Shown: positions 7,249-62,350 of the stretch, in pieces | Layout of the letters: each line of letters opens with the position of its first letter | Position numbering within the stretch: position 1 is the first letter of the stretch | NCBI GenBank assembly: GCA_965153285.1 | Contig: OZ229126.1 | Direction: 5' to 3' (one strand) | DNA from: Podarcis tiliguerta | Lineage: Eukaryota | Length of the DNA: 64,000 bases | Notes under the pieces: model-generated | What the model saw: the letters and a program-made list of their open reading frames with translations, nothing else | Database searches by the model: none | What the model was told of the DNA's origin: nothing | Program-made: the position numbers and the translations under genes

Positions 7249-7394
7249 GATCTGAAGGCAGCCCTGTTCAGGGAAGTTTTTAATGTGTGATATATTGTGC
7301 TTTTAGTGTTTTTTTGTTGGGAGCTGCCCAGAGTGGCTGGGACAATCCAGACAGATGGACGGCATATAAATAAACAAATATCATCATCATCATC
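7249..7394 (+). mobile_element. L2 LINE 3' end
   Basis: ctgaaggcagccctgttcagggaagtttttaatgt (LKAALFREVFNV), then gcccagagtggctggg, then a (tca)n tail. Confidence 0.8.
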
Positions 7395-7674
7395 GTATGT
7401 TGTGGGCCGCGTTAAACTAGGCAGTGGGCCAGAATCAGCATGGGGAGTGCAATTTGCACCCTTCTGAACAAGAGATGCAGGTGGGGAGGCATGTTTCTTG
7501 GAGACTATGCATACTGACCGGCGAATGTGCACATTGCCCAGAGAATGCACAAAACGGGAGTTGAGGTTTGCCCATTCCACAGAGCCTGTGGGGAAGGTAC
7601 GCATATTGACAGGGAAATGTGCACACTTCCCTTTTCAGGGAAGGATTATGTACAGAACCTGATGGATGTACATA

Positions 7675-7900
7675 CAGTGGTACCTCGGGTTAAGAACTTA
7701 ATTCGTTCTGGAGGTCCGTTCTTAACGTGAAACTGTTCTTAACCTGAAGCACCACTTTAGCTAATGGAGCCTCCCGCTGCCGCCGCGCTGCTGCTGCGCG
7801 ATTTCTGCTCTCATCCTGAAGCAAAGTTCTTAACCCGAGGTACTATTTCTGGGTTAGCGGAGTCTGTAACCTGAAGCATCTGTAACCCGAGGTACCACTG
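7675..7900 (-). mobile_element. Tigger-like MITE, copy 3 (inverted)
   Basis: Same TIRs. TA at 7673-7674 and 7901-7902. Internal sequence is the reverse complement of copies 1 and 2. Confidence 0.92.
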
Positions 7901-9299
7901 TAATGGCCGTTTGCTTTGCACACCAACGACTCAACTTATCCCTCCATCTCTCCCCCCCCCCCCCCCAAAAAAAAAGAGACTCAGACTTCTTGCAAGGTCC
8001 TTAAGTCTTGTGCATTTCCTCCAGGTAAAATTTCCCCAGACATTAACAGGGTGGAGAAGAGCCCTTAAGTGGGGGGAAGCGGGTGGAGAAGCCGCCTCCC
8101 CTTTGCTCCGAGAAGGCTGCTAAGGCAAGAGGGCCGCAGCATGAGGCGGCGGCGGCGGCCCCGGCGAAGCTGAAGCCCGAGAAGAGTTGGGAGTCGAGGC
8201 GCACGCTTGAGCAGCAGTCAAAAGCTATGATATCGACACGCTCAGCTGCATCTTGTTAAAAGCTTCCTGCGGGTTGGCAGAACGAAATCTTTATTTAAAA
8301 CACACAAAGTATCGTCAAGGGAGAAAGAAGCGGAAGGGGGAAGACGGCGAGGGGGCGGGTTAGGTTGGAAGGGGGAATCGACGCGCTCTCTCGGCGAACC
8401 CAGCAAGCGGAGGGAAGCGAGCGAGGGCAACCGGCAGGAGGAGCACACGCCGTCGCCGGGTCGGGCGCGCCCGAGGCGGGAAGCACCGGCAGGGCGGGTC
8501 CTGTTCGGCGCTGCCCTCTCGTCCGACGCGCTCTCCTTCCCTTGTAAACGCAGCTCCTTGAGGGAGAACGAGGGCCTTCCTCGTATTAATAGCCTGGGAA
8601 TCATCTGTGCTTACACCTGGAAGAGATCGTGAGGGGGGAGGCGGGAAACCAGGCAGCTCCTCTGAAACCACCCATTCCCTGCCTTCTTAAAAGTGGTGAC
8701 TGGGGTCATTAGCACCGTGAAGGTGTATTCTTTTCATGCCTTATTAACTGCTTCATCGTCCAGGGCGGCGCGGAGTGGGGAGCAAGAGGAGATAAACCCG
8801 CCAAAGAGGGAGGGAGGGAGGGAGCGGCGGCGGGTTTTAGGACAGCAGGGAGCTGGCCGTTGTATCGGAGCGTAACGGGATAGCGGAGAGAAGGTCCGTC
8901 CGCCTCTGAGCCCCGTTTCCCCTCACCGAGCGGAGCGCGCGCGCGCGCGCCTCGAAGTGCGCCGGCGGGGGAAGAGGCGCGAGGCAGAAAGTTCATGAAG
9001 ATACATGCTCTCTCTCAGCTTGTCTTTTCTCAGGAGAGGGGGGGGGGACAACCTCCCCCCCCCCCAGCAACCAAGGCGTGGGTCTTATATGAGGGGGTCA
9101 CAAAAGGGAGAGGTGGAGCTGCTTCTTGTCAGGACTGAGAGGAGCGCGGAATAAAGTGGCGCCTGAGGTGACAAGCGTGAGAAAAGGAGGGTCACTTTCC
9201 AGCGAAACCGCCTTTGTGTTACACGTGTCCCCCCCCCCCCAAAGCATTCCGACACCTTCAACCTGCCGCCACCCCTCTTCTTCCCCCCTCCTCCACCCC

Positions 9300-9524
9300 T
9301 TTCTTGGTGGTAAAGCGCCAACAACCGTCTCGAGACGATAGTTTTTCCCCGCTCCCTGGGCGGTCTTTCCTTCCGCACCTCAGAGCGCCCCCCTTTTCCT
9401 TTCCCCTGCGGCTTTTGGCCGAGTATAGGCAGGCACCGGCGAGCGCGCGAGAGAGAAAGCAAGCAAGAAAGCGCCTCGCCTCGAGGCACTGCCAGCCATC
9501 AAGTGGCTCGTTAAGGAAATGCAG
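9300..9524 (+). other. Candidate first (5' UTR) exon; 5' end unknown
   Basis: Perfect donor CAG|GTGAGT at 9524/9525 inside the CpG island. Confidence 0.55.
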
Positions 9525-10324
9525 GTGAGTGTGAGGAGAGCGGCTTCGAGCTGCTGCTGCTGCTGCTGGTAGCGGCGGCGGTGGGGATGAGCCCTAGCGA
9601 GGGAAAAAGAGAGGAGCTCGTCTTTGCGCGTGTAAGGAAGGGGACGCTTTTTGTGTGTGCGTTGCTGCCGCCGCCGCTGCCGCCTCCTTTCCCTCTCGCC
9701 GGCGGGAGGAGCGCGCCGGTTGCCTCTCTCTCCCCGCGCCCTGCGTGGGTTTCTTCGGAGGGCTGCTCTTCCACAGCACCGGCGTCGACTCCCCGCTATC
9801 CGTTTGCTCCGCTTCTGCCGAGGAGCTCCTGACTTCCCAGCCTCCGCGCTAGCTCGCGCGCACACACACAAACACACACTCCTCCTCTCGCCGTCCCTCG
9901 CCTTTTCTTTATTTATTTTGCCCCTTTCTTCTTTCTTTTTTTAAAAAAGAGAAATCTTTCTCCTCGCCACCACACTCCTCCTCCTCTTTGGCAGCCTCAG
10001 CGCGAGGGGAGAGTTGCAGGTACCGTCTTCGTCTTCTTCTTCTTCGCGCCCTGGCAGAGCGGCGAATTGGGCACGGCGCGCGCGAGACCCTCTCCTGAGT
10101 TATTTATTGAGGGGTGGGAGAACGGCACCCGCTTCGCAATTGCGAGGAGAGAGGGAGGGGGGGAGGAGAGCACTTGAAGCGCCCGCCCGCCCGCCTCTCG
10201 CCCCTCCTCCCTCTCGCGCTCTTCTCCCCCTCCCTCCCCCGCACCCAGCCCTCCTCGCACCCGCAATCTTCTCTCGGCACCAAAACAAACCTGCTGGGCG
10301 TGTGACATGTGGTTGTCTTTGCAG

Positions 10325-10434
10325 TTCATTCGTGGCCTTTGTGGAATAGGAGCTCTGCTCGTAAGGTGACCGGCAGGAGCGGAAAGGAAAGACTCCTTAA
10401 GATTTTCCGGAGAGGTCCGAGCTGGCTGCATTTA
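10325..10434 (+). other. Candidate non-coding exon (110 nt)
   Basis: Acceptor ttgtctttgcag| ending at 10324 and donor TTA|GTAAGT at 10434/10435. Confidence 0.55.
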
Positions 10435-13382
10435 GTAAGTCGGTTTTCTTTCCTCCTACACTCTTTATTTTCTGTTTTGTCTCTTTCATCCCGTCTGCCC
10501 CGTAAGCAGATGCGATGCTGTACATATACAACATCGCGAGTCATGTAACTTAGGGGCGGCGGCGGCGACCATTGGTAGTGTGCGCGGGGTGGGGGGTGGG
10601 GGGGGGGAAGAGTGCATTGAGCTTTTTTTATTCCTCCTTTTTCTATATCGTGAAGCTCAAATGCCAGAAGAGTTGCAGGAGCAATGCTGTTGCTGTTGCT
10701 GGAGATGTTACGTCCCGAGTTAGGACATATAGGAACATTCATCTGAACCAGCCCCCCCCCCTCCCCCGTTTTCCAACAAAGAGATGCTCTTCCGTAGACA
10801 CCTAGAGGATTTTAAATGGAAAGGTAGCACTAGGTGTCAGTTAAGTCTTCAAGTACCAATATATGGTAGCAATATAGTCTTGTGGTTTACTTGCTTGGAT
10901 ACAGTTTGTCTTTACCTTAGCCCCATTCTTGGCTACCCTTGCCTTTTGAGACAGATTCTCAAATGTTAAGCATTGCCTACATCAAAACAGTGTTTTGATT
11001 TGAAAGTGGCACACGCAGGACACAACTTAGGCTCCAGATGCGGTGTTATTTTGTGCTGAGAATCTGTGTGTCCTGTGGGAGAATGAATTTTGGGCAAGGC
11101 CATGGAGGCTGTGTGATTGAGGTTAGTTAATGACAAGGAAGTAAGAGCTTTGCCTGACACAAGGGGTACCATCTTGGAGCCTAAGAAACATCTCTGCATT
11201 AAAAAAAAAAAGTTTTAAGAGCCTTATTCCACTTGGGTCAGACAGACGGATTGTAGCTGGTTTGGTTTGGGTTTTGTTGACCACCTGAAGGGGATCTGAG
11301 GATTAACTGATTGCAACTGGACAAAATAATGAGCAGTGAACATAGCCAATCCAAAAAAAGTGTGTGGACACACAAACACATATACACACACAGAGAGAGA
11401 GAGACTGTTTTCAAATATTTAATAAAACCTTTGTCAGTGGAAATAGAGTTGAGTCAGTTCTGAATGTACTAGGTTGAATCAATAACATTTCAGCATTGTT
11501 TGTTATTGCCAAATGGATTTTGATTAGAATAATTTTGTGCTCCTAGGCAAAGAAAAATGGTACATGCTGCGGATCGCAATATCTACAGTCATTAATTAAA
11601 CTCTCTTTTTTTCTAAAATAGAAACTACCTGTCTCATGAAAGATGATGTGGCAGCAAAAATTATTTAATGAGTAATGCTTTCATTGTTTTAATATTCCCA
11701 AGGTATTGAGGATTCACTATTTTCAGAGTTCCAATACCCTAGACAAACTATATTGAACATGCATTGCTCCCAAGTTCAAGTGTGACCATTAATGGTTGAT
11801 TTTGAAAGTTTCCTCCTTATACTATTGCCAATGGCTGTACTGAAACATGAAAGTTTTATTTCTTGCAATGCCAGTTTTCTCACTAGCACTTCTGATCAGA
11901 TTTGTAATATGCACTGTGCTAAGGCCAATTAGGCAAAACTGGCTTAAGATATTAATACTAGCACAAAGTATTGCTTGGCATGTACAGTTAAGTCAGAATT
12001 GCTTACAGTTACCAAAAACATAATGATGGGAATACTAGGAGAGCGTAGACTGCTAGTTCTAGGAAGAATGAATTAATGTTGGCTTCATGGTAGCTGGATT
12101 ACAATAGTTTTAAACAGCAGCATTTGTGGCCATCTAAAGGTTATTTAATGGTCTTTGAAACATGAAACAACTGAATGTAAGAGAGCTTTTCTTGCAAAAA
12201 ATAAGTGTCTTGTCAGGAATTGTATTGAGACTACACGAGATGGTCAGGTTCGGTTGGCTTATTAATAAAAGTGGTTCGCAACACATTAATGTATTCAGCC
12301 AAGCCAAGGGATTTGTTTGCTAGTTTTGCAGAATATTGTTTAGCACAGCAGTGCTGACTATTGTTGTTTGAGACTAGGATGCATTATCATTTTTTTGAAG
12401 TATTTTCTGGAAACTTTTCCTTCTTTTTTTGGCATGTTCTTTGAATGAGCACACATATGATGGGAATGCTGAACCCTGTCTTTGAAAATTATATTTATAT
12501 CACTGGAATGGCTTGATATAATTTTCCTGAAATGTATACTTGTGCATATTGTGTTTAATATCATGCAATTACATTTTGATAGTATAAAATACAGGTGAAC
12601 AAGAAACTGTTGTGGGCCAGTGCATTAGGGCACAGAGGAATTATGGGGGTAAAACCTTCTTCCCCTTTTGTGCTGTAAAGGTACTTGCATTTTTGAAGAG
12701 GATAGAATAAAGTTGCTGGTGTCAGCAGTAATGCATTTCATTATGCAATTGTTCTTGTTATTCAGATCAGATAATGGCCTGATGAAATACATAAGCAGTC
12801 TACAGGGAATGAATGATTAATTTCTCTAACGTGTGCTTACTATAGGACTTCTAATAAAGTACTGTCTACCAGTTCTTGCTTACAGTTGCAGTTAGTGGAG
12901 AAAAATAGTATTCTGTACTTACTGTTGTTGTGTTAGTAGCACTCATTTATTCTGTTAAATAAAAGAGGATCCTGAATTCAATAAGTTTGGCCTAATTCGT
13001 AAGAATAATAAGATACAGTGATGACCCACCAATTCATTTTGTGTAACCTGTGGGTGTTCTGAATAAGCAAAAAGCAAGCAAGCATGATGCTCATGTAAAA
13101 ATGGCATATGAAACATATTGTTAAACACAGAATGTCTAGCTATTTCTTATAACTAGGTGTACCTTTTAATAACTTTCTTCCCAAGCAAACATCCTAACAT
13201 AACTACTAATGACTTGAACACAAAGCATTCTACCAGTTTCAGGAGTCCTCTTGAAAATTATTGAAAGTATTCAGTAAGTTAGATTCTTATTATTTGTCAT
13301 CCACGGGCATTGCATTTTAAAAAGTTTTATGTTTAGTATGTGTCATGAAAATCGACTAATCTGTTTAGGATAAGCAGTGAGG

Positions 13383-13421: not shown

Positions 13422-15799
13422 GCAAAAGAATTTAATTTGTCAAATCAACTCCATGAAAACGTAGCATAAACAGAGATGTTAAGAGTTTCAGCTGTTGGAG
13501 CCGGTTAACAATGTAAGGTTTCACTGAGTTCATTCCAGCAATCTTCTGCACCCCCACCCCACCCCAATAGTTATTGTTGGAGTGACAAATTTTGTAAAGT
13601 ACTTAAGCTGATAATTTTTTACCTCCAAGAACTAGTAGATAATTCATATACCTTAGAGGTCTTTCAATCCATTTTACATTTGTCTCCCTCCCAACAAACA
13701 GATGCTTTTTGCTTTTTAAAAAATGCATAAAATGCATTTTTATTTTTGAAAGTTTTCCTGGTTTTCTTTCATCAGCATGAGGTTTTCTGGTAGGATCTTT
13801 GTTGAAGTTGATGAAGAACTGTTTGTTTTAGGCAAAATTAAACTGAAGGAATAATTGCATCATTTGGCAAGACTCTAAACCTTTCTGGGTTTGTAATGTA
13901 AATTTCAGGGTGTTTTTCTATATAAAGTGAGCACACCCAAAATCAAGAAGATAAAGGAAAGTCTTGCTCATAATGGGTATCTCAGTAGTAAAGTTTTGGA
14001 TTAGCACAATATAATAATTATTTTTGAAATTCTAAGAACAGAACTTGTGCAGCTTAATCTTGTAGATCTACTAAAAGATCATTGTCAGTTCAATGGGACT
14101 GATTCTCAAGTAAGCATGCATAGGATTGCAGCCTTGGTATATGAAATACTTTATATGAGTTTTGTAGTAATAGCGGCTTTGATACCATAACAGTATATGT
14201 ATTATGTAGTGTATTTGTATATGGTGACCTGAGACAACACTATAAAGTGCAATGCTAGTATTTTTAGATACATTACCAAGTCAACATGTTTTAACCGGCA
14301 AACTACTGTGTTGTGGATGAAACTGGGTTCTCCAGTTTATACTAAGATGTATGAATTGAAGTTCAGCTGAGCATTTGGCCCTAGTTAAGTTAAGCAATTG
14401 GCCTATTAAAAATTTAAAGAACCACTTCTATTAATGCTATCATTTATCAAATTGCAGTGAATTTTTCAGTTGTCGGCCACTGTTAACTAGAAGTGCAATT
14501 CCACAAATTGCAGCTGCTATTAAATAAGTTTGATGTCTTGTGGCAAGTATTCGTGATAAAAGCTGCAAATAATTCAGTTTTATCAAAATAAATGATACAA
14601 AAATTCAAAGCACAGTATGAACAATGCTCAAAATAGATAAGTAATTTGTTGTAATGAAGCTGTGTAGAATGCCTGCTAGCAATGAGCAGTGTGACATCCT
14701 ATTCATGATTAATAGATATTCTTTATGGGCCCCATCCCTTAATCTCTAGGACTGTAAGTGACAATAAGATTAGTTTCTATATATCAGGAGTCATGGATCA
14801 AGTGTTCACAGAGCATAATTTTTATGTAGGTGGCAATTTGGACGACTTTGGACTGGGGAGCTATGTACTGTAATCTTCATATGGGTTTGGTATGTAGAGA
14901 TGATATATTTGAGCAAATCTAAATTGCATAGGTAAAATGATTCTAATGACACTTCACCAACTGAAATATCTACCATGGCAGTGATATGACCTCTTTATTA
15001 ATTCAATTACTTTGTAGAGCGATAATATATTGAAAAGTTTTACAGTAAAGAATGCAGTCACATGGAGCACGTTGTACTTCAAACATCCTTAACTAGAAGC
15101 GTAATACCTGGATTTTAAATGGAGCTGATGGCATCAAAATGTAAAATACAATTCAGGATTTGGAGCCATCCCCAAGTATCACATTGAAAAATGACTTGCT
15201 GTATACTGAAACTCTGTAATGCAAACACTATGTAACATGCTTTAGGTAAGACACAGAGTTGCAAATTTGGCCTTTGTTTTTTTTCTTCCAGGTTGTTCTT
15301 TCCCTTGTGTGAAACATGAATGAGAGCAGGATATTTATTGTGCAAACTGGAATTCAGGACTTAAGGCTGAAATACATATACATACCTATTTGGTATGAAA
15401 TCTTATTGGGCACAGTGGGGCTTCAATCCGAGTAAATATAGCCATAGATTTGGTTTAAAAACTAATGACCAGAGTTTCGGTTCTTCTGAATGAGATATAA
15501 TTAAACAAAGGGTGGGGGGCTTTTAGCGTGTTGTGCCCAAGTTTTTACTAAGCCCTGGAAAGAAACATGAGAAGCAATTGACCATGCCTGCTTTGAGAGA
15601 GCACGGAAGCACCTGTGTAGGTGTGTAGGACTGCTGTACTAATAGATGTCCTCCAGTTTCTCAGTTGTGTTCCTTCTCTGAGAAAGAGGCTTCCACCCAC
15701 CAGCACCCCTTCTCAGGGCAGTTGAGTATTTCTTTAGAACATCCGTTGGTGTGGAGACCTGAGCTTACAGTATTGTTGTGAGATGGCTAAGGATAGTGG

Positions 15800-15954
15800 T
15801 AATAATAATAACAATAATAATAATTTATTATTTATACCCCTCCCATCTGGCTGGGTTTCCCCAGCCATTCTGGGTGGCCTCCAACAGAACATTAAAATAC
15901 AATAACCTATTAAACATTAAAAGCTTCCCTAAACAGGGCTGCCTTCAGATGTCT
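15800..15954 (-). mobile_element. L2 LINE 3' end
   Basis: (aat)n tail plus the same body as 60044-60200. Confidence 0.85.
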
Positions 15955-18900
15955 TTTTCTTTTTTTACATATCCTTTTCTTTTTTTCATTACTTTAAAAT
16001 AATTAAAACATATGCAACAATTACAGAAAAACAAAAAATAAAACAAACAACAAACATTTAGAGAATGGTCTCTGAGAACAGCAACAATTTTTTGTCAAAG
16101 TATGTATTGCTAAGACCACGACCATTTTAACAAACACCAAATAATGGATAGGGTACCATCCTTTGCCTGGATTGTTGGCCATAAAGAGGAATATATATTG
16201 TATCAGCGGCAGTTATGGCCTACAGGAGTTTATATATTATATGTGTTTTTCTTACCCGTCAATATTTATCCAGCACTCTGCAACCTCCTTGGTGGTGAAT
16301 TTTCCTGATCTCAGAAAGCTCCATGGAAGGAGCTACCTCCTGACACCTTCCTCTGGGCTTTGATTAAACATGGGCCTCCAGGAAAGCTGTAGAGTTCAGA
16401 CCACTGGTGAGATTATTTGTAGAAGGAAAGAGTGTGGACACCCATAATCACCCCCTTGACCATTTCAAAATTAAGGTAAATACATATAAAATATTGAACC
16501 CTACCCATAGGAATTTTGCTTAACATATGCTCTCTCCTTTGATAATCTCCAAATGCAATTTTCTCATGTGGAGAATGATTTTTCTTTCTTTTTTTAATGC
16601 AGGATGACAGAGCCATATTTCCCTCAAATATTGTGCTTGATGTTTCCTTTTCTGCACAACCCACTATCAAATACTGTATTTTCATGGAAAATAACATGTT
16701 GCATTAAGTGTCCTCTCCAACAGAGAATACACCTTGCTGGAGTCCAGATGATAGGCTTGTTAATATATGGGCATTCACTGATTGCATTAACGACAACTGA
16801 AAGCCAGTGTAGGATAACAGCTATTTCAAACTTGGTGAACAGAATAAATATTGGTGATCTTGAGGGGGTCACATAATCTAGGTGAAGCACTGCAGGACTG
16901 CTGAAAGTGAAGATACGCAAGGGAACTTTATTTTGCCTAGGCAGGATTTATCTCCCTTCTGGTCCCTGCCCCCCAACTCCAAATGCTCAGCTGGACAAGC
17001 CTCTTTTAATAAGTGTTTCTGTGACTCATAGCTATTTGTCAAACTCCTTCTAACTAATGTTGGTAGTCTTATTCAGCACTTCATATGCTTTGTCCAAGGA
17101 ACTTAAGACATTCTCCTTGAATTGCACTTATGGTTAAAATGTGTTGGTGACTTCAGCTACAAGAGATGGGAACAGGGTAGTTAACTCCAGTTTCATATAA
17201 ACATCAGGGTGGGATTGTTCACATTGGATACAGGACATGATGCGACACAGAATTGGAAGTTACAAATCTTTATGATTGTATGCTTTTATTTTAAGTTTAA
17301 TAATTATAATTCTGCCTGTCTTTGGCAAAAAAAAGAGCCCAATATAGCTATAACAATATCAATATGCTATATTAGTACAACCAATTCCTGGTTAAGAGGA
17401 CAGGCACACACATTTTCTGCATATAATTTTATTTTATTTTATTTTGAAATAAAAATGCAGGAAGCAGAACACACACACAACTATAACAATACAATTAAAG
17501 GAATAAATAAACTAATTAATTTTAATTAGAATCACTTATGAGACAAGTGAGTCAATGACTATATATATATATATATATATATCTCACACATATGCATCAT
17601 TGTCAGAAGAAAATATAGCTAACTGCATTCCACTGGAATTTTATCAGAAATGTTGAAGTGCTTCTGCACGTGAATTAAATGGGAACCATGGTGCCATAAA
17701 CATCACACACACACACACACACATGAGGATTCCTGGTTTGCTTTACTTTCTGAGTAAATTTTATATAATGATTGTCTCCCAAACATAATGAATTTATTGC
17801 TGTTTAGAAGGTTGATTTGGAGACTTCCAACTGCATGTTTTACACATCTTTGTTCCTGTAAAGCACTGTTTAAGAAGGTCTTTGTGTTAGGAATCTTTGT
17901 TATTAGGTTCAAAATGATGACTAAACATATCTTTTGGGATTACTGAGATCTAATGTGGATAAATTCCTAGCAGTGATCAGAAACCAAGTTCCCATCGAAG
18001 GTGAAAGTATGAACCTATCTGTTTGCACCTTACAACAATACTGGCTATAGTTGGGGTGTATTATAGGAAGTCTTGCCTACTGAGAACTTTCAGTTGTATC
18101 TAGCTTTGGGTTGTATAGCAGGCATGGTGTAAATACACTCCATCTGATGGTTTGAGTAACATATATTACATCTTTGCCATCTGTTTCTATGGTAAAAATA
18201 ATTACAGTTCTTTTCTGGTATGGGCAGGGGGAATTGTTCTGAATATTTTTGGAAGGGAGTTGCCACTTTCCTTACTGAGTCTCACTAGGAAGTGCAGCTA
18301 GTGGGAAGCTGTGGAAGAGCCTCATGTCACTTCCCAGAATGCCTTGCAAGTGATGGGGAATGATGTACTGTAGTATCACTGGCAAGTCATTCAAGGGAGT
18401 GTAGGGGGTGGGAAGTTGTGAAGACAGTATTGCACCCACCAGGAATAGTGTGCAGTTTTCTTTTTTATGTTAAAAAAGCAAGTAAAATCGGAAAGCCTTT
18501 GCTTACCTTGAACAAGGTTAAGTGGCAGCCCCCTCCAGAACCCTCTGCCCCATAATTTTTCATATCACCCACCCAACAAATTGTTAAAATAATTTTTTAG
18601 TACAGATCTACTTTAATAATAGTGTATACTGTAGCAAATACTGTCTTGCCATTCATTAAAAAATCTATGCTGTTGGGTTGTCAGTGAAAGGAAGAACTTC
18701 TCATGTCATTATCCAAATTAGCTATGCTAGAGCTTCACTTTTTAATGATTGTATATTTTGGTAATAAGCTTTTCAGACCATTATGACATGGCTTTTCATG
18801 GCAAACCTATTTTGTTACTGAATCTCTTTTGAAAAAATAAACTCATTTGCATTTATTCATTTCAAATATATTTCCATAGAGTTCAAATAATTCTTCTTCA

Positions 18901-27410: not shown

Positions 27411-28613
27411 GCATCATCATCATCATTTTATTATTTATACCTCGAGTTTTGTGGTTTGAAAGAGTAAATTTTTAAGCTGTTCCAGTTTTAATGGAAAGGC
27501 AGCTTAAACTATTTAAAGTGTGGTACCAGATCTGTTATATCACCTTGATTGTTCTACAAAAGAAAGTTTGAATAGAAAGGATGTAATAAGTTGTCATTAA
27601 CAATGGAGGAGAATTTTGCAGATTACTCCCTATACTAAAATAGCAATCTCAGGTATGTCATCCATCATAGATGCTATGCAATAAATTCACAAATCTACCA
27701 GTTTCTGAAATCCATTCTAATGTTGCTCAAACACATTCATGTAGAAATTCTCCACCATCTTAGTTTAAAAACAAACAAACAAACAAACCATTTTTTTTTG
27801 TTTTAATTCAAGTCTATTCATGCAGTTTTTGAAGTTGTTTTTGTATTCTACTTCTATTATGTGATATTTATCAACATTAAAATTTGGTTTCCACTTGTCA
27901 ACCTAGTTACAGAGTAGAACAGAATTCATTTACATTTGACTTACTGCCTGCAATGTGTGCAGTATTCGTCCCAATTTTATGTCATCAGCAACTTTAACAA
28001 TCTAGGTCAGTTATAAAAAGTAAGAAACCACAGAAGCTCTGGTAACGATGACCCTAATAAGACCCCAACTATTTTTCTCTCTCCCACTTTGAAGCATACT
28101 TTGAAGAAATGTTTTATCTTCTCTTCCTGGTGTAGTAAATAGAAGTATTCGGAAACATAGCTTTTATTCTTGAAAAATGAATCATTTTTACTCCATGATT
28201 TCATCCTCTTAGAATAGAAATGAACATTACCTTGCTTGGTAAGGAGACTGAAAATCTTTGGGAGAAAGGTCAAACTAAGTATTCTTAGGGCCCGGAATAT
28301 AAAACTTTAATTTTTGAGTGAAGCTGTAAAATGGCCTCATTTGCACAAGCTGGTACCTATAGCTGGAAATTCTGTCCACTAACTCCTGGATCCTGTTCAC
28401 CTTCATCACCAGCAAGGCTCTCATGTGCTTCTATAATCTCCAATTTAAATCCATGCTGCTTTTGCTAACTTATGTTCAGTGAATCAATTAAGGGCAAACA
28501 TGAAGTCAGTCACAATTTCTCGTTCTCACCACCGTGTTATCCTGGAATTGGCACTCAGGAAATGTATATTTTGTGGCTTCTTAGCAATTTCAGAATGGGC
28601 TTCTGACTACTAT

Positions 28614-28719
28614 TTGTTGTTGTTTAGTCGCGCCCGACTCTTCGTGACCCCATGGACCAGAGCACACCAGTCACTCCTGTCTTCCACTGCCTCCCGTAGT
28701 TTGGTCAGACTCATGTTGG
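28614..28719 (-). mobile_element. Bov-B (RTE) LINE extreme 3' end
   Basis: Encodes NMSLTKLREAVEDRSDWCALVHGVTKSRARL with a (caa)n tail. 13-bp TSD ttctgactactat at 28601-28613 and 28720-28732. Confidence 0.93.
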
Positions 28720-28867
28720 TTCTGACTACTATAGGCTTTGGCAAAAACCTAGCTGGGGGTTGTTCTTCTGCTTGCCAGGCAGAGTTATCCCAAGACATTT
28801 TAATGCCTGAGGCAAAGAATAGGATGGCACCATGCCCACTCCATCCCATGCATGCAAGATGTAAGTA

Positions 28868-29104
28868 CACTCGTACCTTGGTTCTCGAACGGAATCCATT
28901 CTGGAAGTCCGTCTGACTTCCGAAAACATTTGAAAACCAAGGTGCGGCTTCCCATTGGCTGCAGGAGCTTCCTACACTCAATCGGAAGCTGTGGAAGCAG
29001 CGTCGGATGTTCAGGTTCCAAAGAACATTCGCAAACTGGAACACTTACTTCCGGGTTTGCTGTGTCAAAAGGTACTAAGGCGTTCGACAACCAAAGTACG
29101 ACTG
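28868..29104. mobile_element. Second Tigger-like MITE family
   Basis: 24-bp imperfect TIR cactcgtaccttggttctcgaacg / cgttcgacaaccaaagtacgactg. TA at 28866-28867 and 29105-29106. Confidence 0.88.
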
Positions 29105-30200: not shown

Positions 30201-30426
30201 NNNNNNNNNNNNNNNNNNNNNNNNNNNNNNNNNNNNNNNNNNNNNNNNNNNNNNNNNNNNNNNNNNNNNNNNNNNNNNNNNNNNNNNNNNNNNNNNNNNN
30301 NNNNNNNNNNNNNNNNNNNNNNNNNNNNNNNNNNNNNNNNNNNNNNNNNNNNNNNNNNNNNNNNNNNNNNNNNNNNNNNNNNNNNNNNNNNNNNNNNNNN
30401 NNNNNNNNNNNNNNNNNNNNNNNNNN
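30201..30426. other. Assembly gap (226 N)
   Basis: Run of N. Confidence 1.
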
Positions 30427-39646: not shown

Positions 39647-39999
39647 AGAAGGCTGATTGTCAAAGAATTGATGCTTTTGAATTATGGTGTTGGAGGAGAC
39701 TCTTGAGAGTCCCATGGACTGCAAGAAGATCAAACCTATCCTTTCTGAAGGAAATCAGCCCTGAGTGCTCACTGAAAGGACAGATCCTGAAGCTGAGGCT
39801 CCAATACTTTGGCCACCTCATGAGAAGAGAAGACTCCCTGGAAAAGACCCTGATGTTGGGAAAGATGGAGGGCACAAGGAGAAGGGGACGACAGAGGACG
39901 AGAAACTGCGGGAGGCAGTGGAAGACAGGAGTGCCTGGCGTGCTCTGGTCCATGGGGTCACGAAGAGTCAGGCATGACTAAACGACTAAACAACAACAA
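39647..39999 (+). mobile_element. Bov-B LINE 3' fragment inside a (GATA)n microsatellite, with 43-nt internal deletion
   Basis: Encodes RIDAFELWCWRRLLRVPWTARRSNLS..YFGHLMRREDSLEKTLMLGK with a (caa)n tail. (gata)n lies on both sides (39600-39640 and 40000-40020). Confidence 0.95.
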
Positions 40000-41260: not shown

Positions 41261-42012
41261 TTTTCTTATAATGGCAATGATGACCACATGAGAGGTGCCA
41301 CAGCTGAGCTCTGGTAAGCTCTGGCTGCGGGGGGGGGGGGATGTCCTGCTTATTATCATCCTCAGCTGGTATTTAGGTTTATCTTCATTCTACTTCCTTG
41401 ACTTTATCCTCATTGCACTGCTTGTCCCATAATATCCATTCCCATGCTATGCACACCAACAGTTCCCAGACCCCCTTGTTAGTACCACTTGGATTTATAA
41501 CATTTTAACTATTAAGATGGCTCCACAGAACAAAATTCTGTGCAATTTTGTCAATTCTTACGTACTTAGGAATGCATCTGAACATTGCGTTTTTTCATAT
41601 GACATGCTTATTGTTTTCATAACCTTCACCTAAAAAGGAAGAGCTCTAGGCATTCCAAGATAACATATAATAGGCCCGTGAGCTCATCTATCAGCAGAAG
41701 CTGTTCCCAATTTAGCAAACCTCTCTGGGCATCCAGCATGGCTTAAAATAAGCTTATCCTGCATTTCTCATAGTGTAAGGTCCAAAGGTGAGCATTTCAT
41801 CGCAGTGGTTCAGGCACTGGTAACTTTTAGACTGGATTACTGCAGTGCATTTTATGTGGGGCTTTCCTTTCACTTGGTCTGGAAACTGCAGTGAGGTCCG
41901 AATGCTGCAGCACAATTACTTACTTGAGTATTGCCACCATAATATATCTCTCTGTGCTCATAGATCTTCACTGGCAGAGAGTTCACTACTAGGTAGAGTT
42001 CAAGTTGTTACT

Positions 42013-42244
42013 TTGTTGTTGTTTAGTCATGTCCGACTCTTCATGACCCCATGGACCAGAGCATGCCAGGCACTCCTGTCTTCCACTGCCTCCTGCAGTT
42101 TGGTCAAACTCATGTTGGAAGCTTCTTGAACACTGTCCAACCATCTCGTCCTCTGCCGTCCCCTTCTCCTTGTGCCCTCGATCTTTCCCAACATCAGGGT
42201 CTTTTTCAGGGAGTCTTCTCTTCTCATGAGGTGGCCAAAGTATT
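42013..42244 (-). mobile_element. Bov-B LINE 3' fragment
   Basis: ORF 42027-42227 MRREDSLKKTLMLGKIEGTRRRGRQRTRWLDSV...HGVMKSRT, with a (caa)n tail. Confidence 0.95.
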
Positions 42245-45200
42245 ACTACTGTTATATAAATCCATGTTTTGGCAGAACTATCCAGACGCATGATTTGGTT
42301 ACATCTGTTTTTAAATTTGTTAAACATTTTTCTGTTTTTATTGTTTTTAGAAGTTTTAGTTGCTTTAAATAATTTTAAAATGTTTTAAATATGACTTTAT
42401 TTTAATTTTAGCTGTGTTAACTATATATATTTTAATCACAGCTGTGTGCTGTTCCATTGAGAGGAAGTGTGGAATAAGAATTAAATCAATATTTTTTTTA
42501 AATAAATAAATCTTAAAGAACAAAAAAATGGCTCTTGCTGCATATTCAGTCCTACTGTGTGAAGTCAGGACTGAATAGGTTTCTGTTATTCAAATCAAAG
42601 GGCATGATAATTACCGAAAGGTCCCACAAATACTTATTACATTATGGCCTCTACCACACTTTAATTTTGTTCAGAATCATGTGCATGGAATATTGCACTA
42701 ATATTTCCTCAAAGGAAAACAGCTTCACAGTTTCCTTCTGTATGTATAAAGTATTTCATATAGTACATAACTTATTAACATTAATTTTGAGAGTAGTTTA
42801 ATTATATCAGGTGAATAAACCAGTATATCTAGAGGTAACGAGTGATGATGAAAGGCAAAACACAATATGTGTCCTAGATTTCCCTGGTATTTGGCAAATT
42901 GCTGTACTTTGTTGAATGCTGTGACAACTGGGGGAGCGATTATTGAATGAAAGATGTAAGTTATGTGCCTTTTAGGCTGGCTTTTCCATTTAATTCTTCG
43001 GATAATTTGCACTGCACATCAATCTCAGACCTTAGGTGTAAAGGCCAGCACCATTAGCATATATTGTAAGAACAGACTTCAGGTTTGTGCACTAAATCGT
43101 CTAGTAGTATGGGAAGATATGTATAAGGTAAATACTTTCTCCTGCATTTAGGTTTGTTACAAAAAGCACCCACCTTCCCTGAGAAGTATATTTCAAAAGG
43201 TCTCAAAACCATGTTTGTTTGGGGGTTTAGTTTTGCTTCGCAGTTTTCAGCATGCACTGTCGTTCCTAAAATAAGCATCCAGCTGTCAAGTCCTGCACCA
43301 CATTTCAGTATAGATTTGACAATAGGCATAGTAAAGCTGGTGGGGGAATGTCTTCAAGATTCTAACTGTATATGCCTACTATTCCTAGGACTATTTAAAA
43401 GTAGCTAGGTTTCTCCTGTGCCAGCTCCACTTGTTTTGAATGGATTTGAGCGGCGACAAATAACTTGCTAATGTCTTTAATTATTTTATTGTTCATGATG
43501 GGATGCATTCAAAATGAAACACCATGAGAAAAACCTGACAGGACCTGTATCCAAAACTAAATTATATATATATCTTTAAAATATTTTCAAACCAGAGGAG
43601 TAGCTTGGACTTTGTGATTGGTTTTGTTACTAAGTAGCAAATAATGTGTATTTATATAAAACGGCTGTTCCTCTGTTTATGTCTTATAACCATAATACAG
43701 AGTCATGTTACAGAAGACATAGGATGTACAGAATTGATGCCATGTTGTATCATGAAGCTGGTATCCTAAATGGGCAGTTCCATGCTGTGTGAGATAATTT
43801 ATATTTAACTGGTCAAACAGGTTTTGACACCGATCATTGTCTTCTGTGTTTGTATTTATAGCATGAAGATATCTTAAACCATTTTTTTCTATTTATTCTT
43901 CCGCTCTCCAACCCCCTTTTCAGTTGAAAACATGTCAACCAACATGACTTTAAAAGATTAAGAGTACCCCAAAGCTGCCTTGTTGAATGGTTTCCTCTTT
44001 GGGGATCTTTTTTCACAGGGCAGTGGATTTCTAGAGAATAATCATCATCATATTTTGCACTTCTTTATAGTCTTTTATCAGAAATTCAGAGAGGCCTATA
44101 GAAACATTAAACTCACCAAATATGACCATCAAGTACAGTCAAAATGTTCCTTATCCTATAGATTGGTGAAAATGAAGACAGAATAAGGGACCTGTCATAT
44201 TTTGCAGATCCTGGGATGATGTTGTTCCAGTGCTAAGAACAACTCGTAGGTGTTGGCTTAGGACCATTGACGAAATCTGAAAATATTTGCGGGAAGAATT
44301 TGTAGCAGAAATCCATTCTGTTTTTATTCCCCCTCAACTCTGTATGCTGATCTGAAAATCTCTGAGTTTAGCAGCTGACACACCAAGTAAAACAGTATAC
44401 AGAAGGGAAGACCTTACACAAACATAACCTTTTGCTAGCTACAAGGCAGAAGGGATAGCAGTCTGGATAACAGGACATCTATTAAAGTTCTAATCCTAGA
44501 AGTAGAAACTGACTAGTGGCGTTGTGCCAGGAACTTGGTGTTGGTTGTTGAAGTAGAGGGTGGTCATCAACTAAAATTTATCCAGAGTAGACCCACTACA
44601 TGACTACATTAATTTCAATAGGTTAACCCTTGAACAAATACCATTCTGAGATGGGCTCATAGGAACAGCTGATGAAAAAGTTACCTAGTTAAATTTAAAT
44701 ATTTCTGTTTCGAAATAGTTAAAATACCATATAAGATAAAAAGACAGAGTAACTAGGTTGAAGTTGATTTAGATAATATGTATTTTAGCATGATTTACTT
44801 GTTTAACATTTTCAAACACAGTGAGTTTCTTTTCCACAAACCCACAAAAGCAAACTAATTTACTCAGATGTCAACATTATTTGCTTGAAAAAAAATGTTA
44901 TACTTTCATTTTGGTTATCAGAATAACTGTACTAATACCTACATTAAATCCTTCTCATCCTCTCAATGATAAGTACTTTATAAAAGTCACTGTAGTTATA
45001 TCATTGCTATGGAACTTCCTTCTGTTAGACATGTGACAAATCTCTGTGCTTCAGTTTTTCCAGAAGACTATAATTATGGTGGCGTTTCAGACATGAAGTT
45101 TATTAGTTAGGTAATGGTCTCTCTGCATCTGTAAAAAAAGAACCCCTGCAATGTTGAATTTGTTAAAGTTTCAAATTTCATACTATTTTTATTGTTAGCC

Positions 45201-56071: not shown

Positions 56072-57007
56072 GCAATTTCTCTGTGTATACATAAATGCGA
56101 GAAGGACCAAGGATTTTGTTGCCACAAAAGCTGTTTCCCCCCCATCATTTTTGGACACCCAAGGGTTTCCCTGCCCATGCAAGTCTATGGAGCGCTAATG
56201 CTGTACTAGATTATGAAGTTTCTTTTGTCTTTTGCTGTTTAAATGTTGTACTGATGTCTGGTCTGATGAGGGTCATCTTCTAGCAAACCACACAGATTTA
56301 ATATAGAATGCACTTTAACTAAAAAAGTTGAGATTTATGTTGTTTACTTTCCCCTTATTGTTACACAGCAATTAAAGCTAAGGAATGACTGCATGGTAAG
56401 TAGTAAAATAGATGCTCTCAGTCATCTCATAAAATATTTATGCTGTTTTATAATACAGTATAAGATGATACAGAGCTGAAAAGAGATTGGCAATAGGAGG
56501 TTATTCTTAGAACAAAGCATCTGTGTTTATAAAGCCCTTTTTTCATGACATCAGCAGCTAGATTTAACTAGGGTTAATGCAGAAATATTTGCTATTGATT
56601 CAGTATTGAAAAGAGCACAGCAGCATAATAATTCACTTAAAAGTACATATGAGGGTCCAGTAATTCATACAGTATGATTGAAATCTTGTTGTAATACAAA
56701 GCAAGCAGATTTTAACCATTAAAGAAGGCCAGCTACATTAACAGTCATCACTACACATTTAATAATGTTTGCTGTGCAAAATAATTTATTTTTTTTAATG
56801 CATACTAGTCACATTCTGAAATTAGGTTCAGGCACTTTACATTATAGCTCTGAATCTTTAAGCACTAAAGTACTGTAGTGACTGTCAGCATGTGGAACAT
56901 TTTGGAGAACAACGAAGAGAGTAAACACTTTTTCCCCACCCTTGCCGACTGCAAAATTTATTTCTGCAAAAAGAATCCCACTGTCATTTATTGCCTGGCA
57001 TCTAGCC

Positions 57008-57354
57008 TGTTATGTACTGAGTTGAATAGGACCCAAAATGCAGCAGTCTGATTGGTCCTAGAACAATAGGATTCAGAATGCAGCAGTCTGATTGGTCCTA
57101 GAGCAATGCAGCAGTATGATTGGTCTGCAGGAGCCACCCAATCCAACTCCAGATGGAAGTGAAGCCACAACCTGATTGGCCTACAGGAGAATTCCGGAAT
57201 TAGCCAATCACGTGCAGCCCGTTGTGTAAATAAGAAAGCAGATACTTTATATACTGTATATAAAGCAGATACTTTGGGGGAACTTTCATTCCTCCTCACC
57301 ACTATGAGCTGAATAAAGAACATGAAATCCACTCTCGATTCCGAGTATTTTTCA
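57008..57354 (+). mobile_element. Solo LTR
   Basis: TG...CA termini with 5-bp TSD tagcc (57003-57007 and 57355-57359). Contains repeated CCAAT boxes, TATATAAA (~57258) and AATAAA (57312). Confidence 0.93.
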
Positions 57355-57399
57355 TAGCCTTTTGCATGCTGTGCTGGTGTTTGGGACAGAACTGGGTGT

Positions 57400-57780
57400 T
57401 GGGCTGTTTAAGTCTGCTCAGCCTTTTCCTCAGCTTTCTGTGGGTTTTTTGCATCACCCACCCTCCTGCCTTTTATTCAGCCCGGGCATTTGCTGATCTC
57501 CCTTTTGGGGTATTAAGTAGGATTTCTCCCCCTGTAGGCTGATGGGCCTTACTGGCTAGTTCCTTTTCACCTACTCTGTACAGCATTGCTTTTGTTGCAG
57601 GTGTTTTTGCAGGTGATTGCTTTTAAATTGGTTAACTGGTCAAATCAGCAGGTAGGTTATCCAATACAAGTTAAGATTTGGTCGGCACCCTTAGGGACCT
57701 TTTAAGATTGTAGTTCCGAGACTTGCTTTCAGAGCTGTGGGACCTGCTGACAGCGTAAGGGGTGCCTTTGAAGCCAACCT
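57400..57780 (+). mobile_element. Diverged structured repeat with decayed ENE-like motif; ends approximate
   Basis: agtagg (57516-57521) pairs with cctact (57570-57575), preceded by ttttca. A second hairpin is ggcaccctta / taaggggtgcc. Confidence 0.45.
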
Positions 57781-57907
57781 GTCTGCATTAAAATTGCATG
57801 CACTTTGTATGTGCTCCAAATGTAAAATACGAACTTTTCCATGTTTTTCATAGTACTCATTTGTGAAATACATATGTTGCATGTATCTTTTAGGGCAAGC
57901 AATATTT

Positions 57908-57952
57908 TTGTGTGCACTTTTTGAAAAAATTGTGTGCACTTTTTGAAAAATT
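57908..57952. repeat. 22-bp tandem duplication
   Basis: ttgtgtgcactttttgaaaaa(a) occurs twice. Confidence 0.9.
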
Positions 57953-58279
57953 TGAAGTGTGCAATCTGGTTTCAGTTCAACTGAATTCTACCCAGAGTAG
58001 GCATATTGAAATTAATGGTGCTAAACTAGTTATTGTGAATATGAATAACATTAGATATAACTCGAACATTTGCTAAGGCTTGAACCTTTGGTGCATTTTC
58101 AGTGTGAGCACTTGCAAAAGGACATATTGACTTATCTTGGAATAGGGCACACAGCCTTGGCTCTAATGCAAATGATGGGCACTGTGTTAGTTTGCTCTTG
58201 GGAATTCTGGGACTGTCCATGGTGGAAAAAGATTTCTTCGGGGTCCTAGAAAGCATCTGCTTCCTTCCACTGTCTTGTG

Positions 58280-58528
58280 CATGGGTAGGCAAACTAGGGA
58301 CCGGGGTCCAGATCCGGCCCAATCGCCTTCTAAATCCGGCCCATGGATGGTCCGGGAAAGAGCGTGTTTTTACATAAGTAGAATATGTGCTTTTATTTAA
58401 AATGCATCTCTGGGTTATTTGTGGGGCATAGGAATTCATTCACCCCCCCAAAAAAATATAGTCCGGCCCCCCACAAGGTCTGAGAAACAGCGGACCAGCC
58501 CCCTGCTGAAAAAGTTTGCTGACCCCTG
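58280..58528. mobile_element. hAT non-autonomous element (OC1/OposCharlie1-like)
   Basis: Ends catgggtaggcaaact / agtttgctgacccctg with perfect 8-bp TSD gtcttgtg (58272-58279 and 58529-58536). Confidence 0.88.
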
Positions 58529-60043
58529 GTCTTGTGCAAAGAGAGGAAGGCAATGGTGGCAAATGAGCATTTGAAAAAAGAGCACTTTTGTATTGATCTG
58601 GGTACAGCAATATATGCCGTTTTGTATACAATTTCTTTGTAATATAATGTACTTCAGAGGCTACATTCCAACAGCGTTAAAAGCTCCTGTGTCTATTAAA
58701 ATCAATAGGCTTAGGGGTGCATAACTCACCTTTGGGTTTTGAACAGCAAAGTAATGCACTCCAAACTGTTCCTCTGATATGACATGTTGAAGAAAAAGGA
58801 GCAAATTCTGCTGCTTTCAAACTCTTCCCTTGCTTGCAACTTCAGCTGCATGGCAGAGGAATAGAATAGTCACAACTTCTAAGTATTTAATTCTACTTGA
58901 CTTTGTTTTCACTTGACTTACTCCTATCATGAGAAGCACGATAGATTTTCCTGAAGCCTCTTACTGTGGTATGTTCCTAAATTTTAAAATGATAATTCTA
59001 ATTATAATAAACGACGTGTAGTTTAGAATGCATAAATCAGTGAACAACTAAATGGACAGAATCCAAACAGAGTAGAATGCAGCCTACACTTGAGGTTTTT
59101 CTAATAATTTAGACAGAAGGCATGAAATATTTAACATGTAGTATTGGCTGAGGAGGTAGTTAAAATAGATTTCCTATACAGAAATCTAGGAATAAACACT
59201 GCGAAGCAACTGAGAGTCCAGAACAGTTTTTTTTTCCACACCTCTCCTTTGTCCTCCTCCCACCTCCACTGTACCCCTTAGCCGAAATTCAGTATTCAAC
59301 ATTATGCCAGTAATCTGTGGCAGAGTGAATGGATATGTGATAAATTGTCTTTTGAAGTTTATAAGGTGTTTGTCCGTAAAACAAGAGAAAATATTTTCCT
59401 CCCCATTACTCTCTTCCTGACAATCCAGGCTGGTGGGCTATCTAGAAGCTGTAAACACCTCTTTGCTTTTTAGCACAAAGTCCCATACATCCATTTCAAG
59501 GTTTTACAGCTATAAAGGCAAGCAAACAAAAAACCCTGACTGCCTACATAAACTGGAGTGGGCTGAAATGTTGTGATTTTGTTTATTGCTCTTTTACTGC
59601 AGTGGTCAAATAGTTCCTTTGAGACCAGACACTGGTACTCTGCCATCTGTACACTCGATGTTAGACAACTTGTATCAACTGAAGCACTGTGACAAATATT
59701 TATAACGAGCATGCTAATTAAATGAAATGCCACTATTCAGAATTGTGGAGGATATAAGATTAATGGCAAATTAAAAATAACTTGTCATCTTTCTTCTAAT
59801 AGATAATGATGTTGCTATCATGAGAGACACTGACTGTATTCCACTAGGGGTGAGCTGAAATGGGGTTTTTTCCATCAAATATTCTTGCCAGTGTTGAAAG
59901 GCAAACCAGCGTGTTTCCCTGTTCAGAAAAGTCTTGTCTCTTGACTCCAAATAGGCTTCATCTGCACTCAGTAATAAATATTCATGGTGAGATTTAGCAA
60001 CATGATCAGTCCGAGAAGCACTGCTCTTTTCCTGACTAAGCTG

Positions 60044-60270
60044 TAATAATAATATAATAATAATAATTTATTATTTATACCCCGCCCATCTGGCTGGGCT
60101 TCCCCAGCCACTCTGGGCGGCTTCCAAAAAAATATTAAAATACTGTACTACATCAAACATTAAAAGCTTCCCTAAACGGGGCTGCCTTCAGATGTCTTCT
60201 AAAAGTCTGGTAGTTGTTGTTCTCTTTGACATCTGGTGGGAGGGCGTTCCACAGGGAGGGCGCTAGTACC
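60044..60270 (-). mobile_element. L2 LINE 3' end
   Basis: Encodes APSLWNALPPDVKENNNYQTFRRHLKAAPFREAFNV with a (tta)n tail. Confidence 0.9.
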
Positions 60271-60870
60271 AATGCGGACGAACCAAAGCTCACCCCAGGG
60301 TTCCTGTGGTCCTGGCATGGCCCTAGCCCCTCAAGTGGGCTTTGGATGAGATCCAAGACCCCCAGATTTCTTTAATGGAATACCCAGTTTGGGAATACCC
60401 AAACAGAGGGGCAGGTGATGGCCGCACCTCCCCTCCCCACAATCCAACTGAGCCAATGCCTAACCGCCACCTTACAAGTTGTGACGATTGCTAAGGGGTA
60501 GGCAAAAGCCAAGTGGCTAGAGTCAGTTTGCCAAATGGAAAAAATTCCTACCCAGTCCCTGTTCCAAAACAGGTGACCCAAACCAAAGCATGGACAGACA
60601 AAACTACCTAATTCCTGGGGGGGGGGTTTCGGCAGCGCGATGCAAGTGCCCCTACTTGTATCACGCTGCCGCCTTTTAAGCCCTTGGGATCACACCACCC
60701 TCTGGGGATTGGCTAAACAGCCTGGCGTGATCCAAGGGCTATGGCCAGGGCTTTTAGCTACTCTCCCACCAACTAAGTCCCAGGGGCCCACGCACAACCA
60801 GCACCCTCTAATAGGAGGATCCCATTTACTGAAATATTAACTGGGTGGCGGGATGGGACTGAACTTAAAA
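60271..60870 (-). mobile_element. Highly structured repeat with best-preserved ENE-like motif; 3' part appears truncated at the L2
   Basis: Several strong hairpins plus gggtagg-aatttttt-ccatttggc..gccacttgg-cttttg-cctaccc on the minus strand. Confidence 0.6.
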
Positions 60871-62350
60871 AAAGCAGGGAGAAGCAATGGCAATAATCAC
60901 TTTAAAATGAAGAGCAGATTAATGTTTGAAGTTATCTGCTACCCCCAAACAGTACTTTTGACCTGGAAAACAAAATGGTTGAGCATTTGGAACAGAACAT
61001 TCATGTTAATGAGGTGACATAAGCCACTTTGCTCATGCAGCATCTTTTTGGACAGAGGAACCAAAGGTCTTCTTCTTTCTACTCTGAGCAGTGGTAGGGA
61101 AGCCATGGTGATGAGTCTGGGGCTGCCTGCTCCTCCCTATGTGATTGCAATAGAAATGGGATCCTTTCTGGCCCAGAAGGGGCAGATTATCTATCTCCCC
61201 ACCCCCACCCCCCACAGACCGACTCTGATAGGTAGGTTGCTGTGGGTCAAATTTGGCAAAAGCAGTTTGGCAAAAGCAGGTGCATCATAGGCACACCACA
61301 AACATCAGTGGACTGAGAGCATGTGGCCTGGCAGCTCACGGTTATGGATACTCCTGGCATGCCAGAGTCCAGTTTCTGGGGACACAGAGCTTATTGTTCT
61401 GCCTGGCTGTTTTTGCAGTGTACTGAGCAGACATACAGGTCACCTGATCATGTCATCTACACTCTGATGAGATGTGTTGCATTTCTGTTTAAATCACAGC
61501 ATACACCCCCCCCTCCCGAAACTTGTGCCTATACGAATAATTCATCATATGCAAATTTTATGCACATAAGTATCCTCTTTTTGGGTGAAGCATTTTTCTT
61601 CTCTCTCTCTTTTTTTGGGTGATATATTAGTTCTCTGCTTACTCCCTAGTTAGTGCATTTAGGATTGCTGCCTTAGTTATTTTTTCTGAATATCTTAAGA
61701 AATTAGGGGTGCGATTAGGGATATGTACTAGATTTTATGTTCACAACAGCCTTATGTGGTATAGATTAGGCCTGAAAGAAAAGCTCACATTACAGTGGCA
61801 GTGACTTGATAAAAACCGTCTAACATCTACTATTATGACCAGCCCTCTTTTGTTTCCAAAAATGATAATGAGGAAGAAGAGTCAATGACTATTCATGACA
61901 GCAACAGCTATGTAATGGGAAATGTTTTATCGTCATGGCCTGTGTCTTTCACCCCTCTTTGTTCCCTCTTGCCTGCATGTGAAAGAGTCCTTCCAGGACC
62001 CACTTGTCCTCTTCGTATGTCTTTCTGTCTTATCTATGACTTCTACTTTCTTTCTCTCTTTGTTAGTGTGTGTCTCTTTCTGTCTGTCTGCTTTCTCTTC
62101 CTGCTCTCTCCATGTGAGAGAGTAACAGAGAGTGAATTGATAGGATGCTCTTTTAAAAGAAATATTAACAAAGGCAGCACAACATGTAACTGGCAACACA
62201 GGGCACACGACTGAAAATATAGCAATGACTGTAAAGGGAAACAATACATTATACAATAAAAAAAAATACTTTTCAGGAAGCCACTCCATTGGGTGGTGTA
62301 AGCTGCCAGGGCATCATAAGTTGCATTCAATCTATTAATAAAGCTTACAA

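Follow-up and report, generated by a model that had tools for sequence, protein, structure and literature searches.

Three hairpins with U tracts on either side of an internal loop, found in a 64,000-nt stretch of Podarcis tiliguerta DNA (the window), are, to judge from their alignments, homologous and very old copies of one dispersed repeat. The hairpin is probably a selected module of this repeat, and the leading single mechanism for it is that of a PAN-type ENE, an RNA element that captures the poly(A) tail of its own transcript. Reading the hairpin as a PAN-type ENE-like element, with a triplex role proposed by analogy from its shape, its homology and its conservation, has in our estimate a probability of about one in three.

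Shape and conservation of the three hairpins

The hairpin that had been flagged in the sequence-only reading (c60; 60496-60553, minus strand) consists of a 7-bp lower stem, an internal loop with U6 opposite U4, and an upper stem of 3+4 bp (CCA..UGGC/GCCA..UGG). Direct reading of the site gave a perfect lower stem (GGGUAGG/CCUACCC) and the loop sequences AAUUUUUU on the 5' side and CUUUUG on the 3' side. In RNAfold this shape was both the MFE and the centroid structure, whether the hairpin was folded alone or together with 60-70 nt flanks (191 nt in total). A covariance model built from the three copies (R2) scores c60 at 61.3 bits. The second copy (c2; 2312-2371, plus strand) has a 6-bp lower stem (AGUAGG/CCUACU, read directly) with an outer U.G, a U5/U6 loop (AAUUUUU and UUUUUUCA) and a 6-bp upper stem. 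Its fold, including the lower stem, was retained when flanks were added (RNAfold), and it is the copy that most resembles an ENE. The third copy (c57; 57516-57575, plus strand) carries the lower-stem letters of c2, degraded UUUCU/UUUU tracts and a shifted, weak upper stem; its lower stem forms with 6-nt flanks, and the ENE-like shape is not the MFE structure of either the bare 60 nt or the piece with long flanks. All three sites read as the sequence-only reading had described them.

In the MFE and centroid structures of c60 (U6/U4) and c2 (U5/U6), the opposed U tracts are unpaired. At least five U on both sides are present in c2 alone; the 3' tract of the flagged c60 is U4, shorter than the run of about five U per side that some five U.A-U triples, as in PAN, would take, and its tracts permit at most four such triples. 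The lower stem is topped by two G-C pairs that are invariant in all three copies, and between these pairs and the U tracts lie one or two unpaired bases on each side (AA/CA in c2, A/CA in c57, AA/G in c60). Directly above the U tracts, C16 and G44 are invariant and complementary. Tight closure of the U loop from above is seen only in c60, immediately by CCA/UGG; in c2 and c57 just the C16-G44 pair is common at this place, and the real upper stems begin 5-6 nt further in.

The hairpins are no more stable than shuffled sequences: the folding z-scores of the short pieces were -1.3, -0.9 and -0.2, and those of the three sites with flanks were -0.9, +1.25 and +1.0. The weight of the argument rests on what the copies share and not on the fold.

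Evidence of common descent comes from several comparisons. A sensitive blastn search within the window linked c2 with c57 (64% over 77 nt, E = 0.1) and missed c60, and local alignment gave z-scores of 5.4 for c2-c57 and 3.3 for c2-c60, with both alignments centred on the hairpin. The earlier description of three diverged copies of a lizard repeat is thus borne out as regards homology. When the copies were aligned over 600 columns, three-way identity peaked at the hairpin (13 invariant columns per 30), against mostly 2-8 in the other windows of the alignment, two of which reach 9. Within the hairpin, conservation is uneven: the 27 end columns, which comprise the lower stem and the U tracts, show pairwise identities of 81%, 88% and 67%, and the 33 middle columns are ~46% identical, with several columns invariant. 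Conservation of the U tracts, on which the sequence-only reading had made its proposal depend, was therefore found, since together with the lower stem they form the best-kept block (67-88% pairwise); its statement that the upper stems differ entirely in sequence does not hold, given the identity and the invariant columns of the middles. The flanks of the three copies barely align and whole-element alignments are poor, with patches of shared letters extending upstream to the region of a TATA box and ~150 nt downstream.

The number of such sites can be compared with chance. The pattern GTAGGA-N30-55-CCTAC matches exactly c60, c2 and c57 in the window, where 0.30 matches are expected, and three or more matches occurred in 2 of 100 shuffles; the three matches also have extra letters in common on both sides. 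A scan for shape (a stem of 6 bp with two G-C pairs at its top and, on either side, a T4 run no further than 3 nt from it) returned 3 loci in the window, as compared with 0.5 +/- 0.7 per dinucleotide-shuffled window, and a single hairpin of ENE shape per 64 kb is near chance. Scanning metagenomes with the core pattern yielded 24 matches, all of them unrelated chance hairpins.

A consensus fold of the three copies (RNAalifold) places the lower stem at columns 1-6/55-60, above it an internal loop that is symmetric (14x14), and the upper stem at columns 21-26/35-40. Five of the six lower-stem pairs never vary among the copies and are thus uninformative on structure. The outer pair is A-U in c2 and in c57 and G-C in c60, which agrees with the claim that it covaries, and the U.G next to the c2 stem corresponds to a G-C in c60, where it adds one pair. 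In the upper stem, c2 and c60 both form pairs 21-24/37-40, three of them changed on both sides, and in c57, whose stem is shifted, these pairs are broken; the assertion that the diverged upper stems still pair is correct in the same columns for c2 and c60, and c57 has a weak stem in other columns. Double changes, one in the lower stem and three in the upper stem, affect 4 of 10 pairs among the 3 sequences, against 0 or 1 in slid controls, and the observed covariation score was reached by 26 of 500 shuffles. The covariation is weak: from three sequences it is suggestive and not significant, and there is little to speak for selection on an RNA structure.

Two further hairpins in the window were considered as members of the family and rejected. 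The first (c4; 4471-4521, minus strand), retrieved by a structure descriptor, is a separate ENE-shaped hairpin with a 7-bp stem and U7/U4CU6 tracts; it lies 39 nt upstream of an AATAAA (4426-4431) and has the 12-mer GCATGCTGTGCT in common with c57, in collinear position. In a leave-one-out test with model R2 it scored 12.4 bits (E = 1.2). Including it makes the lower stem more covarying, with three pair types at position 1; because it was found by a structure descriptor and scores so low when it is left out of the model, this covariation was discarded. The second (c2b; 2668-2724, plus strand), which follows c2 at 300 nt and precedes an AATAAA by 64 nt, is a possible degenerate relative and the sole extra match of the three-copy model in the window (25.7 bits, rough E = 8e-4); its own MFE structure is a different, non-ENE fold. 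The possibility that c2b and c4 form an inverted duplication was dropped, as their alignment identity is at background level. A hammerhead ribozyme of Penelope-like elements was also considered, on account of the CUGAUG in c57, but the site has neither the GAAA core nor an Rfam match.

It is rather unlikely, in our judgment, that the hairpin has no RNA function and is an ancestral short inverted repeat with T runs that the copies inherited, the apparent conservation and covariation being small-sample noise compounded by the way the motif was selected. The lack of a thermodynamic signal, the chance occurrence of such shapes about once per two windows, the 5% of shuffles that reach the covariation score and the poor alignment of whole elements all fit such an origin. 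However, neutral decay that erased the flanks should have erased the 27 end columns as well, yet these are retained in all pairs of copies, and the three exact pattern matches share extra letters on both sides where 0.3 matches would be expected. Pure inheritance without function thus appears disfavoured by the unevenness of the conservation. Because decay that blurs the flanks would also blur the hairpin ends, the copies would rather derive from deeply diverged sources, each keeping the core; and since all of these sources kept it, the core appears to be a module of the repeat under selection.

The host repeat and its transcription signals

The repeat that bears the hairpin is non-autonomous, unclassified and non-coding. 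Pfam domains of RT, RNase H, integrase and tyrosine recombinase were absent from the 224 open frames of at least 65 aa that we scanned, which gave two chance matches only (E = 0.005). The oppositely oriented c57 (plus strand) and c60 (minus strand), 3 kb apart, showed no detectable likeness as terminal repeats (blastn). A search near c57 for LTR ends with a target duplication gave a sole TG..CA candidate with a 5-bp duplication, which was rejected because it starts inside the CCAAT repeats described below. With no linked RT or recombinase ORF in the window, and neither paired terminal repeats nor a target-site duplication, the suggestion that the host is an element of DIRS/Ngaro type finds no support here. 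Among the Rfam 15 families, none that was relevant reached the gathering score in the window, and none matched c60, c2 or c57 at E <= 10. The ORFs spanning c60 and c57, by which we searched for other lizard copies, had no match in the protein collection, and ten ORFs of the window were not on record.

Other repeats adjoin the hairpin-bearing copies. A ~250-bp element is present in three copies that are 83-89% alike (1794-2042, plus strand; 4970-5205; 7673-7903), and its inverted-repeat ends (TACAGTGGTACCTCGGGTTA ... TAACCCGAGGTACCACTGTA) give it the look of a MITE; the c2 repeat has one copy immediately upstream, which may interrupt it. A SINE-like repeat occurs four times (6587-6682; 7250-7390, minus strand; 15799-15955; 60043-60198), with a shared stretch that opens with an (AAT)n-like run and then TTTATACCCCGCCCATCTGGCTGGG, and one of its copies, 300 nt downstream of the c60 hairpin, cuts off the c60 repeat. 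Elsewhere in the window, fragments at 28610-29044 (minus strand), 41992-42384 (minus strand) and 39903-39999, with several inverted copies, have translations that end in '...LVHGVTKSR.RL', a tail that we take to be typical of the 3' end of a reptile LINE/SINE, BovB-like. A CpG island at 8000-10500 (GC 0.59-0.61 amid DNA of 35-40% GC; CpG observed/expected 0.86-0.98, falling once to 0.64) probably marks the promoter or the first exon of a gene; its many overlapping open frames contain no Pfam domain. Positions 30201-30426 are a run of 226 N, either an assembly gap or masked sequence.

Upstream of c57, on the plus strand, there are two tandem 40-bp units (57025-57104), each containing an ATTGG (inverted CCAAT) box; over 57025-57215, this array comprises two and a half units followed by two more CCAAT boxes. 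A TATA box (TATATAAAG; 57257-57265, plus strand), read directly, is found ~250 nt upstream of c57, and the homologous stretch of c2 reads TACAAAAGG at ~2077-2085. Taken on its motifs, the region 57025-57265 is promoter- or enhancer-like, with the look of a textbook Pol II promoter within the repeat, and what lies upstream of c57 is reminiscent of an LTR or of a small Pol II unit that is self-contained.

These CCAAT repeats and the TATA box, together with the G.U pairs on the U-rich strand, make it likely that the U-rich strand is the sense strand of the element, and c2 folds more strongly in the sense than in the antisense orientation. The sequence-only reading had named a motif lying antisense to the element's transcript as an outcome that would count against it; the promoter-like motifs and the G.U pairs point to the orientation that it assumed. 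Of the words sampled from 57000-61000, 5-8% recur in six possible RNA runs that belong to three organisms, so that some part of this interval may be transcribed in several related species; DNA runs sharing words with the same interval came from four organisms.

The hairpins lie at differing distances from poly(A) signals. On the sense strand, the nearest signal variant to c60 is an ATTAAA 120 nt downstream (60371-60376, minus strand), and that to c57 is an ATTAAA 211 nt downstream (57787-57792, plus strand). For c2, an AATAAA with a GU-rich stretch after it (2789-2794, plus strand) is situated 417 nt downstream, and it is this signal that lies 64 nt from c2b. These distances (+120, +211, +417) are neither constant nor short. 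A further AATAAA (57312-57317, plus strand) precedes the c57 hairpin by 204 nt and follows the TATA box by ~50 nt; if it is used, the c57 hairpin would be located beyond the poly(A) site, within U5 or a leader, which would argue against an ENE. Runs of at least 6 A were absent within 500 nt downstream of c60 and c2, and c57 has one, 348 nt past the hairpin; ARAGORN detected no tRNA-like gene in the window. The observation that no A-tract or tRNA-like fold follows the hairpin is accordingly correct, save for the run past c57, and an ENE at these sites would therefore be of the tail-binding type.

The position of the poly(A) signals also bears on the alternative that the hairpin is conserved for another role in cis, which we consider rather unlikely: it could be a U-rich upstream cleavage/polyadenylation enhancer, of the sort to which 3'-processing factors bind, or act in packaging, export or RT-recognition, with the U tracts binding protein. 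The same conserved stem-loop that speaks for an ENE speaks for such a role, and what is kept is the letters of the stem and not its pairing alone (5 of 6 pairs invariant), as would suit sequence-specific recognition. The c4 and c2b hairpins, moreover, stand 39 and 64 nt upstream of AATAAA, and U-rich polyadenylation enhancers usually sit at such distances. Yet the three copies whose homology is clear lack a poly(A) signal at less than 120 nt, opposed U tracts that are closed by stems on both sides would not be needed, and no RT gene is linked to the hairpin.

Improbable is a linear 3' splice-site signal with an incidental hairpin, in which the 3' U tract plus CCUAC would be a polypyrimidine tract 32-42 nt after a branch-point-like motif (CUGAC/CUGAU) in the three copies, with a YAG past the stem: AGCA does follow the stem in 3 of 3 copies, as read directly (CTGAC then TGTGTAG/CA in c2, CTGAT then TGTACAG/CA in c57, CTGAC then CCCTTAG/CA in c60), but chance alone often places an AG after a pyrimidine tract, upstream we saw no donor site that is conserved, and neither the equally conserved 5' half (GTAGGAATTTTT) with its complementarity to the 3' half nor the compensating change in c60 is explained.

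The hairpin as a proposed PAN-type ENE

An ENE is a stem-loop with a U-rich internal loop that adjoins at least one G-C pair, situated close to the RNA's 3' end, and it contacts the tail through U.A-U triples and A-minor interactions (PMC7583470). In known ENEs the U tracts and the adjoining G-C pairs are kept and the upper stems are variable (PMC7583470, PMC12501189), and in the ENE of the Evade retrotransposon the G-C pairs and the U tracts are essential (PMC12501189). The lizard hairpin, with its retained U tracts and G-C pairs and its variable middle, matches this pattern (PMC7583470, PMC12501189). The ENE architecture that the sequence-only reading had assigned to it is hence partly upheld: the succession of stem, opposed U loop and stem is present and the pattern of conservation agrees, and the U4 tract of c60 and the absence of an Rfam match tell against the assignment.

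According to the mechanism that we propose, the hairpin would form the core that has been kept in an old dispersed repeat, one that is non-autonomous and has its own promoter-like region. In the sense RNA of the element, and given a position near enough to the 3' end, part of the poly(A) tail of the same transcript would be gripped between the two U tracts through U.A-U triples, and the two invariant G-C pairs atop the lower stem could offer a platform for A-minor contacts. The tail would thereby be shielded from deadenylases, and the RNA of the element would last longer.

Transposon ENEs have been described in plants, fungi and slime mould and in stickleback retroviruses, some of them within LTRs (PMC7583470, PMC13541005, PMC12501189), and have been proposed or shown to protect the RNA of the element from deadenylation (PMC12501189, PMC13541005, PMC7583470). 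The stickleback retroviruses are the only vertebrate case of a transposon ENE named in one review (PMC7583470), and we found no paper connecting a lizard repeat with a U-rich internal loop. Apart from transposons, where they come mainly from plants and fungi, ENEs are known in a few viruses and in MALAT1/NEAT1. The more far-reaching claim, that a high-copy, non-coding, promoter-bearing lacertid repeat carries a working single-domain PAN-type ENE, the first from an amniote transposon, in introns and intergenic DNA, we regard as doubtful. If it is true, host or read-through transcripts could gain stability from the repeat-borne ENE. A working ENE would extend to amniotes the hiding of transposon tails from deadenylases, and a widespread squamate repeat would supply many natural variants for the study of a minimal clamp. 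If it is not an ENE, the hairpin is nothing more unusual than the core that an old repeat has conserved.

The ENE of KSHV PAN, which lies ~100 nt from the 3' end of its RNA, is similar to the lizard hairpin in that U tracts face each other across an internal loop and G-C pairs top the lower stem, and in neither case is there an encoded A tract or tRNA-like fold downstream. PAN forms five U.A-U triples and its tracts abut the stems directly (PMC7583470), whereas the lizard tracts are U4-U6 and stand 1-2 unpaired bases off the lower stem. The lizard hairpins also differ from it in their distance of 120-417 nt to the next poly(A) signal and in giving no match by sequence or covariance model.

With the ENE+A of MALAT1 and NEAT1 (MEN beta), the likeness consists in an internal loop rich in U and, on their side, a vertebrate nuclear RNA. 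These elements need a downstream encoded A-rich tract and a tRNA-like fold cleaved by RNase P, and their loops are interrupted by C/G; the lizard hairpins, in contrast, have no A-rich tract, no tRNA-like fold and no C/G-interrupted loops. The upstream elements (USE) of poly(A) sites, for example those in retroviral LTRs, resemble the lizard repeat in placing U tracts upstream of AAUAAA in a promoter-bearing repeat, a likeness seen in the spacing of c4 and c2b from their AATAAA. Unlike these, the three homologous copies have no nearby signal, and USEs need no closed two-sided loop.

The transposon ENEs compared here are the dENEs of plants and fungi (TWIFB1), the ENE of Arabidopsis Evade/Copia93 and those of stickleback retroviruses. 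Most of these are double-domain and lie in a defined 3' UTR beside the poly(A) site, and function has been demonstrated for the Evade ENE; the lizard hairpin, in contrast, is a putative single-domain ENE in an unclassified non-coding repeat. What it has in common with them is that they too are borne by mobile elements, in some cases within LTRs.
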